Shown here: in pieces, positions 43,303 to 59,228 of the stretch
Numbering within the stretch: the first letter of the stretch is position 1
Layout of the letters: each line of letters starts with the position of its first letter
Sequence record: OU343167.1
Reading direction: 5' to 3' (one strand)
DNA: 64,000 nucleotides
Notes under the pieces: model-generated
Told to the model about the DNA's origin: nothing
What the model saw: only the letters and a program-made list of their open reading frames with translations
Databases searched by the model: none
Translations under genes and position numbers: made by a program

Positions 43303-43770
43303 ATGTCAGTAACACTCAAATTTCCTTTTATGCCGTCTCTCGAAGCAGCGGAGTTGAGTGCTGTTATCCGTGATATCTATTTTGACCAATGTGCAGAGAA
43401 AGGGATTACTCCCAACCCAGATGCTTTCGAACATCAACCTGTCACACATGTTACGAATATGGTACATGGCGAAGGTGAAGACGTTCACTGGGCGGAAGAT
43501 AGCGACAGCGAGAATCTTCATATCTGCTTCACATGTCCGTTGACTGGTGCGCTGGCAAAGGTCGTTCAACCCCTTATCTACAATGCACCCATGAATAAGA
43601 TCTGTGTTCGTCTTTGGATTGAACACATGTTACTTACCATGCTGGAATTGTTGCTGTTCACTCAGATGCAAGAGCAAATAACAATGATGTCAGAAGCGGC
43701 AAAAGAACGGCGTGCAGTCATCACAAAATCCATTCATGTAAAGAAGGATCAACTCGATGCAATTAAATGA
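43303..43770 (+). CDS. hypothetical protein
   Basis: AGGA RBS; start moved to MSVTL. Confidence 0.75.
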   Translation: MSVTLKFPFMPSLEAAELSAVIRDIYFDQCAEKGITPNPDAFEHQPVTHVTNMVHGEGEDVHWAEDSDSENLHICFTCPLTGALAKVVQPLIYNAPMNKICVRLWIEHMLLTMLELLLFTQMQEQITMMSEAAKERRAVITKSIHVKKDQLDAIK

Positions 43771-44287
43771 CCTGCGTATTCCTGCTGAACTCATTCCTAT
43801 CGGCTTGTGCTGCATCTGGGCACGTGAACAATATGTTGATCCGAATGGCAACTATTTCTTCACCACCAAAGAGGTTATTAGCGGTATCCATCTGGATAAG
43901 ATGGTGGAAGAGTTTAATAAAGCTATGCGAGAGCATTTCTATCATAGCAACCACATCGAGATCACTCTCCACGGCATCGAAATCAAAGATAATAAAGTCC
44001 ATTACTTCCATCAAGAACCTGCTGTTGAGTTCTATGATGAAGTAAAAGCACAGTATTGCAACGTTGAGCTGGCTCGTTATGATGCTGACGTAATGGACAA
44101 AGACCTGTTCTTTGATATGGTGTCGAAAGAAATCGCTGACCTGAGTAAGATGATCATGCAGCATATCTACTTTAAGTTTGACCGAGTACAAGCGGAGACC
44201 TGGTCTCGTTACCTGCTTGCACGTGGATCTAATAAAAGAAACGGGACTGGCCTTGAGTCAGTTGACGTAGAAGTTAAACTCTCGTAA
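43757..44287 (+). CDS. hypothetical protein
   Basis: AAGGA RBS. Confidence 0.75.
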   Translation: MQLNDLRIPAELIPIGLCCIWAREQYVDPNGNYFFTTKEVISGIHLDKMVEEFNKAMREHFYHSNHIEITLHGIEIKDNKVHYFHQEPAVEFYDEVKAQYCNVELARYDADVMDKDLFFDMVSKEIADLSKMIMQHIYFKFDRVQAETWSRYLLARGSNKRNGTGLESVDVEVKLS

Positions 44288-44311
44288 AAGAATACTTGAG
44301 TTGTAATGATA

Positions 44312-44680
44312 TACGAGGACTAATGTCCCAACAGAACAGAGGTCACCCGGATCATCTCCCCTAAGGCTCCCCGTCGCCACATTAGGGTGCCGCAGTGACC
44401 TCGCCTTATTCCCACTAGCTTTCGGTGTAAGTGGGCTCTCTCCGCATAAGTTCGGAGAGACTAACAGCGATCCATGCCAAAGGATCAAGCCGAAGCAGGT
44501 ATATTGACTTGGCCGTCTTTATATCTGAAGTTACGACGACTACTACCTCCAGTAGAGAGGGGTATCTCTGAGTGGCGTTGCCTAACCAGATAGGTGCCGA
44601 CCAGTATTCGGTGCCTTAGCTGGCCAGCTTTCTGGTAAGGTAATTTAACGAATAGCCCGCTCCGTTGAGGAGCGGGTTTT
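44312..44680 (+). ncRNA. candidate large (~350-nt) structured ncRNA, family unknown
   Basis: GC-rich non-coding gap in a gene-dense region; many inverted-repeat helices; terminator GCCCGCTCC/GGAGCGGG-TTTT at 44655-44680. Confidence 0.6.
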
Positions 44681-44716
44681 ATTCCGCCTTAGACCGCAAA
44701 CAGGAGAATTTAAATA

Positions 44717-45394
44717 ATGACTATTGTCATATGGGATGGTAACGATCTTTTGGTTGATCGCATTACTACGATCACTCAGAGCGACATCACCGGAGCTGAT
44801 GGTAAACCTCGGCCATACTACGTAGAACTTGATAACTCCAAGATCTATCTTGCCTCTGACCATAAGTGGGAAGCTAAGGTTTGGGGTAGGAATATAAAAG
44901 CATTTACGATGGTTGGAGATACCGAGCATCGTCATTGCTGGCTTAATTTCCTGGAGACGGGTGACGATGTACACAGCTTAGCAGAGACAGCTAAGAATTT
45001 CCAGCACTTGCTGTCACCTAATGCGGAATACATCGTTATCGATGAAGACAATGTTCTTCATGTATTCGAAGCCACCCATGTAGAATTTAGGAGCAATTAT
45101 TATTCCACTCCTGCACGTAAACCAATTATTTTTGGTTGCGCTGAAGCAGTTGAACTATTGAATAATGTATTCACCTCGGCTGAGAACAAACTAAGCCCAC
45201 TGGAATGCATGGTTATAGCTCAAGCGCACTATCCTGTACTTGGTCGTCGATTCGATCACTGGAATGCTGAATCGAATATACTCACACGTGACAATGATCT
45301 TAGTGATCGGGCACGTCATTGGGTAGCAAGTCGGGCAGTGAAAAAGATATCGGTTAACTCTAAACCCCGTCCTGTCAATATCGTAAATAGGTAA
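44717..45394 (+). CDS. hypothetical protein, possibly Ntn-hydrolase (HslV/proteasome-beta)-like
   Basis: N-terminus MTIVIWDGNDLLVD resembles Thr1 Ntn hydrolases; IIFGCAE resembles the late GSG-type motif. Confidence 0.4.
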   Translation: MTIVIWDGNDLLVDRITTITQSDITGADGKPRPYYVELDNSKIYLASDHKWEAKVWGRNIKAFTMVGDTEHRHCWLNFLETGDDVHSLAETAKNFQHLLSPNAEYIVIDEDNVLHVFEATHVEFRSNYYSTPARKPIIFGCAEAVELLNNVFTSAENKLSPLECMVIAQAHYPVLGRRFDHWNAESNILTRDNDLSDRARHWVASRAVKKISVNSKPRPVNIVNR

Positions 45395-56360: not shown

Positions 56361-56447
56361 TGGCTGGTAAGGTAGGATTCGAACCTACGATGGGCTTTCG
56401 CCAACGGATTAACAGTCCGCCCCCTGCTACCGCTCGGGTACTTACCA
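56361..56447 (-). tRNA. tRNA-Asn(GTT) with long variable arm (type II body)
   Basis: TGGTAAG/CTTACCA acceptor, G73, GCGGA-CT GTT AA-TCCGT, variable arm GGC-GAAA-GCC, TTCGAAT, CCA; 87 nt. Confidence 0.9.
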
Positions 56448-56458
56448 AGAAAACTATC

Positions 56459-56492
56459 CAGTCGCTTGCTCTACCGACTGAGCTATCGCGGA
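56459..56492 (-). pseudogene. 5' half of disrupted canonical tRNA-Asn
   Basis: TCCGCGA-TA-GCTC-AGTCGGTA-GAGC-A-AGCGA-CT-G: positions 1-34 of a proteobacterial-type tRNA-Asn. Confidence 0.88.
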
Positions 56493-59027: not shown

Positions 59028-59205
59028 ACATAAAGCCTCCCGATGGGAGGCATTATGCTCATCAACACAACAAGGAGAAAGATACAACTTACCAACTGAA
59101 AGGAGGGGACCACAACAGGGAGTCTTACTTCCTAGAAGCCAGCTGGAAGGGTTGCTGGCTCCGGCGAGCTGTGGTCTATGTAAAAAACGAGGAGTGACGT
59201 CTCTA
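59028..59205 (-). ncRNA. candidate ~150-nt sRNA upstream of tRNA-Leu/Pro
   Basis: GACCACA/TGTGGTC and AGCCAGC/GCTGGCT helices; TATGTA-type motif at 59203-59219; terminator 59028-59057. Confidence 0.4.
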
Positions 59206-59228
59206 CATATCATTACATAGTGGGTAAG

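Follow-up and report, generated by a model that had tools for sequence, protein, structure and literature searches.

For the giant phage phiKZ, 17 non-coding RNA (ncRNA) candidates derived from 5' untranslated regions (5'UTRs) by premature termination have been reported (Putzeys et al. 2024, PMC10914365). In the same work, promoter-proximal terminators of phiKZ were shown experimentally to yield abundant short RNAs, at loci other than the one considered here, and terminators in 5'UTRs commonly have two modes, giving either a short RNA or full read-through. Also described is a small RNA (sRNA) conserved among giant phages, named sRNA005 in 201phi2-1 and sRNAgp182 in phiKZ (PMC11512511). The sRNA screen of 201phi2-1 took only transcripts <250 bp, so an RNA of the size discussed below was excluded from it (PMC11512511), and a 2026 review gives the ncRNAs of jumbo phages one sentence. 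The present analysis concerns a gap between two protein genes (positions 44288-44716) in a stretch of 64,000 nucleotides (nt) from sequence record OU343167.1, referred to below as the window. This gap holds a real ncRNA gene of ~365 nt, and many phiKZ-like giant phages of Pseudomonas share its fold. Together these RNAs make up a new family, related to the short RNAs reported from phiKZ 5'UTRs but expanded relative to them. The literature searched contains no description of this family, named here after its core hairpin D1, of its covarying structure or of its large form.

The locus and its transcription unit

The window comes from a phiKZ-like jumbo phage of Pseudomonas aeruginosa. For the region, BLASTN gives 100% identity with vB_PaeM_phiLBG22 and 94-97% identity with PA1C, PS119XW, BRkr, HHBS36_1, and phiHQ. 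The gap is 429 nt long and is flanked by the open reading frames (ORFs) 43757..44287 and 44717..45394, both on the + strand, the latter being a PHIKZ289-like gene. Inside the gap only short, unconserved ORFs are found, and the GC content equals 0.52 across 44300-44599 vs 0.41-0.45 in the flanks. A first-pass annotation of this DNA, made by a model from the letters alone, had described a GC-rich gap without a credible ORF, and these values agree with it. The predicted fold of the gap has z = -5.2 on the + strand relative to dinucleotide shuffles (0 of 100 equal it) and z = -4.3 on the - strand. All helices named by the first-pass annotation are present at the coordinates it gave. These include GGAC/GTCC (44317-20/44325-28), GAGGTCAC/GTGACCTC (44339-46/44395-402) around CCCTAA/TTAGGG, CCCACT/AGTGGG, TCTCTCCG/CGGAGAGA, GATCC/GGATC, GGTGCCGA/TCGGTGCC, and the AGCTGGCCAGCT hairpin. 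The terminator that it had placed at the end of the region likewise exists as a terminator-like hairpin with a T run.

As for the promoter region (44286..44315, + strand), it consists of an A-rich stretch and TACT (together 44286-44296, with TACT at 44293-44296), followed by TGTAATGATATAC. Differential RNA sequencing has shown that middle promoters of phiKZ carry TACT centred 22 nt 5' of the start site, with an A-rich repeat in front of it (PMC8244752). According to this description, the start in the window is placed near 44316, which would be the foot of the 5'-terminal hairpin P1. The layout AAAGAATACT, 5-7 nt, TGTAAT, 2 nt, TATA precedes every homologue. The intrinsic terminator (44655..44681, + strand) is formed by GCCCGCTCC/GGAGCGGGT and a T run (44677-44681), and sits 35 nt before the ATG at 44717. 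It ends every homologue alike, and its hairpin carries compensatory changes in PhiPA3. The predicted transcript is thus ~366 nt long, with hairpins at both ends and its 3' end probably at the T run. The window therefore has the layout of the phiKZ-type 5'UTR-derived ncRNAs, with a promoter directly 5' and a terminator inside the 5'UTR of the next gene. The length from promoter motif to terminator is 151 nt in Phabio and ~130-140 nt in phiKZ and Psa21, vs ~366 nt for the unit in the window.

The first-pass annotation had also pointed to an upstream 11-mer, TGTAATGATAT, as recurring before other RNA genes of the window. Exact copies lie at 44302(+) and 59207(-), but the 11-mer itself is not enriched beyond chance. 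With one mismatch allowed there are 4 matches vs 2.5 expected, a count reached by 25 of 100 shuffles, so TGTAATGATAT alone is not significant. What holds is the longer promoter context, which is conserved before every homologue. The same promoter layout also stands before a small terminated unit at ~59.2 kb and before tRNA genes on the - strand; for 201phi2-1, tRNA-Leu has been reported as transcribed from a middle promoter.

The core hairpin D1

The family was discovered from invariant strings seen by eye in the 449-nt gp424/gp425 gap of 201phi2-1, which were followed up with pattern scans, synteny with a gp287-like gene, BLASTN, and two covariance models (R1 and R2). The synteny search recovered loci when an alignment of gp287-like proteins was used, but none with a single gp287-like protein as the query. 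The pattern scans, synteny, and covariance models yielded 17 lineages. One scan of metagenomes and one of genomes, both with a loose pattern, each returned at least 120 matches, mostly chance ones in GC-rich genomes, and the metagenome contig L094 is the sole genuine one among the matches listed.

The part kept in all lineages is D1, a three-tier hairpin (44339..44402, + strand) supported by model R1 and by covariation. It is composed of an outer helix (44339-46/44395-402), a middle helix (44348-50/44390-92), an inner helix (44359-64/44382-87), and an apical mini-helix (44365-67/44376-78). The internal loop AUCAUCUC (44351-58) and the apical loop UCCCCGUC (44368-75) are invariant. Three strings are identical in 17 of the 17 lineages, namely AUCUC at the end of the 5' internal loop, UGCC on the 3' side, and CCCGUC in the apical loop. 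Single-sequence folds of 13 sequences all give the same architecture. The D1-core family is defined by this three-tier hairpin and its strings AUCUC, CCCGUC, and UGCC, placed after a middle-type promoter and before a terminator, and all of these are found in the window.

Model R1 was built from eight sequences, without the window group, PhiPA3, phiKZ, and Psa21, and nevertheless recovers all four. In the window it matches 44336-44404 with 34 bits and an E-value of 2e-5. In the alignment of the 17 lineages, 97.8% of the cells in paired D1 columns are standard pairs, and 19 of the 23 pairs show changes on both sides. None of 500 shuffles reaches any of the five measures used, and pairing falls to 32-49% in slid controls, where the partners are shifted by 1-3 columns. 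A partner for the D1 apical loop was sought inside the RNA, in the GWRGCG region and among GACG strings, and no conserved one was found.

Upstream of D1, the hairpin P1 (44317..44328, + strand), supported by the fold and by comparison, has the stem GGAC/GUCC and the loop UAAU. Its counterpart in PhiPA3 is GGAA/TTCC, a compensatory change, and the long forms have GGAG..CTCC in the same place. Between P1 and D1 lies the A-rich linker CAACAGAACA (44329..44338, + strand), which is single-stranded in the folds and has A-rich equivalents in all homologues.

The 3' module of the large form

The 3' module of ~280-290 nt (44403-44650) fills the space between D1 and the terminator, and all of its elements given below are on the + strand. 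It begins with three hairpins. P5a (44411..44435) has the stem CCCACT/AGTGGG, replaced by the compensatory CCCTC/GAGGG in PhiPA3. Its loop holds the invariant CUUUCGG (44419-25), the DNA equivalent of which, CTTTCGG, is found in 12 of the 12 full-length members. P5b (44437..44460), with the stem TCTCTCCG/CGGAGAGA and the loop CAUAAGUU, corresponds to variable hairpins in the long forms. The stem of P5c (44469..44486), GATCC/GGATC, is fully compensated, with GCAGC/GCTGC in PhiPA3, GGAGA/TCTCC in 201phi2-1, and GACCAT/ATGGTC in L014 and L017, while its loop contains GCCAA (44476-80) in the window and RCCA in all members. The string CCGAAGC (44490..44496) is invariant in all full-length members. 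Its part CCGAAG can pair with UUUCGG (44420-25) of the P5a loop, which would make a long-range helix or a pseudoknot. This possible helix is predicted by RNAalifold on the long forms (columns 225-231/308-314).

In the following hairpin P6 (44496..44527, stem 44496-501/44522-27), 5 of the 6 pairs covary, and the loop contains TTGGC (44509-13), complementary to GCCAA in the P5c loop. The two loops change together, from ACCA/UGGU in the long forms to GCCA/UGGC in the window and PhiPA3, with a fifth loop pair that reads A-U in both L014 and L017 but G-C in L016. This pattern suggests a loop-loop (kissing) contact between P5c and P6. The contact lies outside the pair counts given below, the MAFFT alignment of this segment being out of register. 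P7 (44530..44576) pairs GUUAC (44530-34) with GUGGC (44572-76) and closes an insert that varies among the lineages (44535-71). It has two invariant U-G pairs, which fit the + strand only, and its fifth pair covaries (C-G in 7 sequences, U-A in 3).

The 3' three-way domain (44579..44642) is supported by model R2 and by covariation. It comprises P8, a helix of 12 positions (44579-90/44631-42), P9 formed by GGTGCCGA/TCGGTGCC (44593-600/44608-15), and P10 formed by AGCT/AGCT (44618-21/44626-29) with a GGCC loop (44622-25). The string CTGGCCAG is invariant save in HPP-Temi, where a change from A to G leaves a U-G pair. P8 bears on the CCTTA/TAAGG helix of the first-pass annotation. Both of those sequences are present, but TAAGG (44636-40) is better paired with CCTAA (44581-85), within a helix that covaries in relatives, and the pairing with CCTTA fails in HPP-Temi. 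Model R2, built from seven long forms only and with the window left out, matches the window end to end (44495-44648, E-value 0.0026). On the R2 alignment, 94.8% of the cells are paired, 26 of the 36 pairs have changes on both sides, and 0 of 500 shuffles are as good. R2 has no match in PhiPA3 or HPP-Temi at E-values up to 1, and the 3' domains of both were compared by eye. The large form is defined by the P6-P7-P8/P9/P10 3' domain, GAAGUUAY, and the CUGGCCAG hairpin, and the window carries all of them.

Distribution and conservation

Large forms are found in the PA1C/PS119XW group, HPP-Temi, PhiPA3, 201phi2-1 and its close uncultivated relative L013, and Viktualia, as well as in the uncultivated 300-kb phages L014, L016, and L017, the metagenome contig L094, and the divergent L265. 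Minimal forms, which consist of D1 and the terminator only, occur in phiKZ (in the PHIKZ288/289 gap, with the D1 homologue at L010:8613-8680), PA7, Psa21, Phabio, L260-264, L267, and L270. Thus, D1 is the universally conserved core, and the 3' part is an accessory module that phiKZ, Psa21, and Phabio lack. In all members the RNA lies downstream of the gp287-like gene, and BLASTN finds one place per genome. Judging by the identities of the gp287-like proteins, large and minimal forms are present in both major branches, which makes repeated loss of the 3' module the simpler history.

According to the identity values, the RNA is more conserved than its neighbours. It is 90-100% identical in eight relatives, the flanking proteins of which go down to 75-77%. 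For HPP-Temi, the nucleotide identity of the gap is 89.7% vs 75% and 77% for the two flanking proteins. In PhiPA3, which belongs to a different genus, the first 146 nt are 77% identical and the downstream protein is 34% identical; the upstream protein of the window has no match in PhiPA3. Every homologue has 3-15 stops in each of the six frames, no shared frame is open, and the indels are not multiples of three. Together with the high identity of the gap, this indicates strong constraint on a sequence that is not protein-coding. As for the strand, the U-G pairs of P7 and the U-G wobbles of D1 in PhiPA3 would be C-A mismatches on the other strand, and the promoter, the terminator, and the neighbouring genes are all on the + strand.

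Rfam 15 was searched with the whole window at the gathering score, and with the region and four homologous loci at E-values up to 10. These searches return only tRNAs and one sub-threshold terminator match (Thr_leader, 26.5 bits where the gathering score is 55, with an alignment that rests on the terminator hairpin). Models of RNase P RNA, 6S, SRP, introns, riboswitches, GOLLD, and ROOL are not matched, the absence of RNase P RNA holding at the gathering score and at E-values up to 10 alike. ARAGORN reports seven tRNAs and no transfer-messenger RNA (tmRNA) in the window, and Rfam shows no tmRNA match at E-values up to 10. The identities tmRNA, RNase P RNA, intron, riboswitch, GOLLD, and ROOL were rejected on these grounds.

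The absence of tmRNA and RNase P RNA had already been noted by the first-pass annotation. Its central proposal, a novel structured phage ncRNA, is borne out as well. Homologues are found in phiKZ-like relatives, two separately modelled domains covary, conservation exceeds that of the flanking genes, stops occur in six frames, and neither Rfam nor ARAGORN assigns the RNA to a known family.

Proposed role and alternative explanations

The retention of D1 in every lineage and the unpaired state of its invariant bases indicate that the product works as an RNA. The preferred reading, to which a probability of roughly 0.6 is assigned, is an independently transcribed structured ncRNA gene, belonging to a family of Pseudomonas phiKZ-like (Chimalliviridae) jumbo phages without an Rfam entry and having the following role. 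The non-virion RNA polymerase of the phage would transcribe the RNA from the middle-class promoter, with a start near 44316, and the 5' and 3' hairpins would give it stability. The working surface would be the two unpaired C-rich strings of D1, the AUCUC(C) internal loop and the YCCCGUC apical loop. Their putative partner would be either a protein or a G-rich RNA, for example, a Shine-Dalgarno-type GGAG(A) region. The 3' module would serve as a compactly folded scaffold, held by the possible UUUCGG/CCGAAG helix and the P5c-P6 contact, and would add stability or a second binding platform. Because the unit lies directly upstream of the PHIKZ289-like gene, read-through of the terminator would make the same RNA the 5' leader of that gene as well.

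Several points weigh against this reading. The covariation counts come from model-fitted alignments, which favour the modelled structure, and this is mitigated by the slid controls and by the independent detection of the window. Both strands of the UUUCGG/CCGAAG helix are invariant and hence beyond the reach of covariation, and few independent changes stand behind the P5c-P6 contact. The start site is placed by the promoter motif only, and complementarity of the D1 loops to GGAG-type ribosome-binding sites is generic.

The main rival is a purely cis-acting 5' leader or attenuator controlling terminator read-through into the PHIKZ289-like operon, with D1 as a sensor, comparable to a riboswitch or to HK022 put, that responds to the polymerase itself, a protein, or a metabolite, and with the short RNA as a mere by-product. 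Such a mechanism is a tenable but clearly less probable explanation. The order of promoter, RNA, terminator, ribosome-binding site, and gene is the same in every member, D1 stands only 12-14 nt before the terminator in the minimal forms, and two-mode terminators are common in phiKZ 5'UTRs (PMC10914365). Furthermore, a PHIKZ289-like gene follows the RNA, directly or past 1-2 small genes, in phiKZ, Psa21, L260, L270, the window group, PhiPA3, Viktualia, and L013. The downstream genes, however, differ among the lineages, and no PHIKZ289 homologue was found at the loci of 201phi2-1, L014, L016, L017, and L094 within the sequence examined. In the window, D1 is ~250 nt away from the terminator. No riboswitch or leader family is matched, and no conserved antiterminator pairing was found between D1 and either strand of the terminator, partial matches being seen in phiKZ and L013 and absent in 201phi2-1.

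An unlikely alternative to the ncRNA gene with C-rich binding loops is a large ornate RNA with its own activity, either a ribozyme, as the first-pass annotation had suggested, or an RNA that self-assembles like GOLLD and ROOL through the self-complementary GGCC (or UGGCCA) loop of P10. The large form would then be a new class of ornate phage RNA, either catalytic or assembling into an RNA or ribonucleoprotein particle through the GGCC loop and the loop-loop contact, and D1 could engage a component of host translation. Possible leads are the resemblance of AUCUCC to the anti-Shine-Dalgarno tail of 16S ribosomal RNA (rRNA) and the complementarity of CCCGUC to the universal GACGGG string in the 5' domain of 16S rRNA. 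The size, the helix density, and the invariant unpaired strings CUUUCGG, CCGAAGC, GAAGUUAY, and CUGGCCAG fit this type of RNA, as do the candidate tertiary contact, the palindromic loop conserved in all large forms, and the location in a phage genome, where seven clustered tRNA genes lie a few kb away. However, no ribozyme, GOLLD, or ROOL model is matched and the sequence gives no sign of processing, so that the ribozyme suggestion finds no support. In addition, phiKZ, Psa21, and Phabio do without the entire 3' module, and a loop of four bases is short for a kissing contact.

A very improbable reading is that a mobile insertion, for instance an intron without an ORF, makes up the ~290-nt module that separates D1 from the terminator and is spliced out to leave a short phiKZ-like RNA. 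Minimal and large forms do differ by one block, located between a conserved CCUAUU-like string and an AU-rich string near the terminator. Nevertheless, a search of 561 nt returns no group I or group II intron match at E-values up to 10, no homing endonuclease is present, and the ORFs on either side are distinct genes with a stop, a ribosome-binding site, and a start of their own. In 201phi2-1, which has the large form, a long-read study reports no intron beyond the one in an RNA polymerase gene (PMC11512511), and the presence of the module in both major clades favours loss over repeated insertion. Least credible of all is the absence of any RNA feature, with a decayed protein gene or a DNA element (operator, origin, or packaging site) in its place: small coding sequences (CDSs) are auto-annotated over the region in HPP-Temi, HHBS36_1, and Viktualia, and P10 is a DNA palindrome containing TGGCCA, but the stops in all frames, the non-triplet indels, the concentration of substitutions in compensatory pairs, the G-U pairs that fit one strand only, and conservation above that of the neighbouring genes all speak for an RNA.

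Neighbouring genes and other transcription units

The gene directly downstream (44717..45394, + strand) has its own ribosome-binding site and encodes a protein of 225 amino acids (aa), a distant homologue of PHIKZ289 (BLASTP E-value 1e-8), PSA21_390, and PhiPA3 gp355. Most members start with MT-(I/Y)-IV-x-D, and the N-terminus of the window protein presumably resembles those of N-terminal-nucleophile hydrolases. Searches of Pfam and PHROGs with seven neighbouring proteins were uninformative, the product of 44717..45394 having no Pfam or PHROG-function match, and PHIKZ289 has no match in a sequence search of the PDB. This gene would be expressed from the promoter of the RNA only upon terminator read-through.

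Public annotations place protein genes on the RNA in several relatives, namely gp425 in 201phi2-1 (L012:8505), CDS0139/0140 in Viktualia (L004:1586-2036), and CDSs in HPP-Temi (L003:2644-2861) and HHBS36_1 (L007:444-569). The small CDSs in Viktualia, HPP-Temi, and HHBS36_1 look spurious. As for 201phi2-1 gp425, its annotated start falls inside the RNA; in the relative L013, a terminator and then a ribosome-binding site lie further along, and the start M-x-L-x-DEL is conserved. In PhiPA3, gene 354 (L001:2600-3004) is annotated as "putative phage integrase", a label that looks unfounded, given a product of only 134 aa without a match in Pfam or PHROGs. The stop codon of gene 354 overlaps the promoter motif of the RNA.

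The sequence after the terminator stem is conserved across genera in the family (TTTATTCCGTCTCAAGGAG-like), for example, at 44677-44700 in the window and L013:7645-7665. This tail may correspond to the terminator motif shared by phiKZ and 201phi2-1 (PMC11512511).

Two further units resemble the one described in their layout. On the - strand of the window, 59031-59217 is a second promoter-to-terminator unit without an ORF, in which TGTAATGATAT continues as GTAG and ~170 nt are followed by the terminator GCCTCCC..GGGAGGC with a T run. It stands directly 5' of tRNA-Leu, which has its own A-rich/TACT promoter, and is unrelated to D1 or the 3' domain, neither R1 nor R2 having a match there. In phiKZ, the PHIKZ287.1/PHIKZ288 gap (L010:8067-8207) contains an A-rich/TAC promoter-like string ending in TATGTAG, ~90 nt without an ORF, and a strong terminator directly before the ribosome-binding site of PHIKZ288, and is not similar to D1. 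Separately, a 5' half of a tRNA (~35 nt, with the acceptor strand, the D arm, and the start of the anticodon stem) is seen at ~56458-56492, within 56361-56492 on the - strand of the window. It lies directly upstream of the tRNA-Asn(GTT) reported by ARAGORN, which is unusual in having 87 nt and a long variable arm, and could be a remnant of a replaced tRNA or a split gene.

Comparison with known systems

Nucleus-forming phiKZ-like phages are model systems and phage-therapy candidates, and their RNA biology is almost unexplored. The D1-core family is supported by covariation and is common to no fewer than seven named genera or lineages. The core is also carried by phiKZ itself, a phage for which antisense silencing and Cas13-based genetics exist. 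The natural series from a one-domain form to forms of ~480 nt eases the design of structure-function tests, and the family offers a defined target for asking why a giant phage needs a structured RNA. It is also suitable for submission to Rfam and corrects annotation errors, namely the start of 201phi2-1 gp425 and the CDSs in Viktualia, HPP-Temi, and HHBS36_1.

The Rsa RNAs of Staphylococcus use unpaired C-rich loop strings (UCCC motif) to pair with ribosome-binding sites. The RNA in the window likewise has C-rich unpaired loop strings, but shares no homology with them, and the resemblance is a lead only. HK022 put RNA is a structured promoter-proximal antitermination element. Like put, the RNA in the window is a structured element located directly after a promoter and before a terminator. 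Unlike put, it occurs in one place per genome according to BLASTN and gives no hint of action on the polymerase, and the polymerases of jumbo phages are unrelated in subunit make-up.

GOLLD (RF01998) and ROOL (RF03087) are large RNAs rich in helices. Phages carry them, often close to tRNA genes, and neither has an established function. The RNA in the window is also phage-borne, helix-rich, and located ~4 kb from the cluster of seven tRNA genes. In contrast to both, it is smaller, occurs only in phiKZ-like phages of Pseudomonas, exists in a one-domain minimal form, and matches neither model.

Among the RNAs of the giant phages themselves, sRNA005/sRNAgp182 is similarly conserved, structured, and promoter-proximal, and is common to phiKZ, 201phi2-1, EL, and PhiPA3. 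Unlike the RNA in the window, however, it is small and belongs to another locus, upstream of the tail gene gp182/gp277. The 5'UTR-derived ncRNAs of phiKZ come from the same phage group and share the phage promoter, the non-coding transcript, and the intrinsic terminator just before a gene, and the D1-only unit of phiKZ (L010:8613-8680) may be among the 17 candidates reported (PMC10914365). In contrast to these RNAs, which are <250 nt and defined by read ends, the RNA in the window has ~366 nt and an extra multi-helix module, and belongs to a family defined by covariation in 17 lineages.

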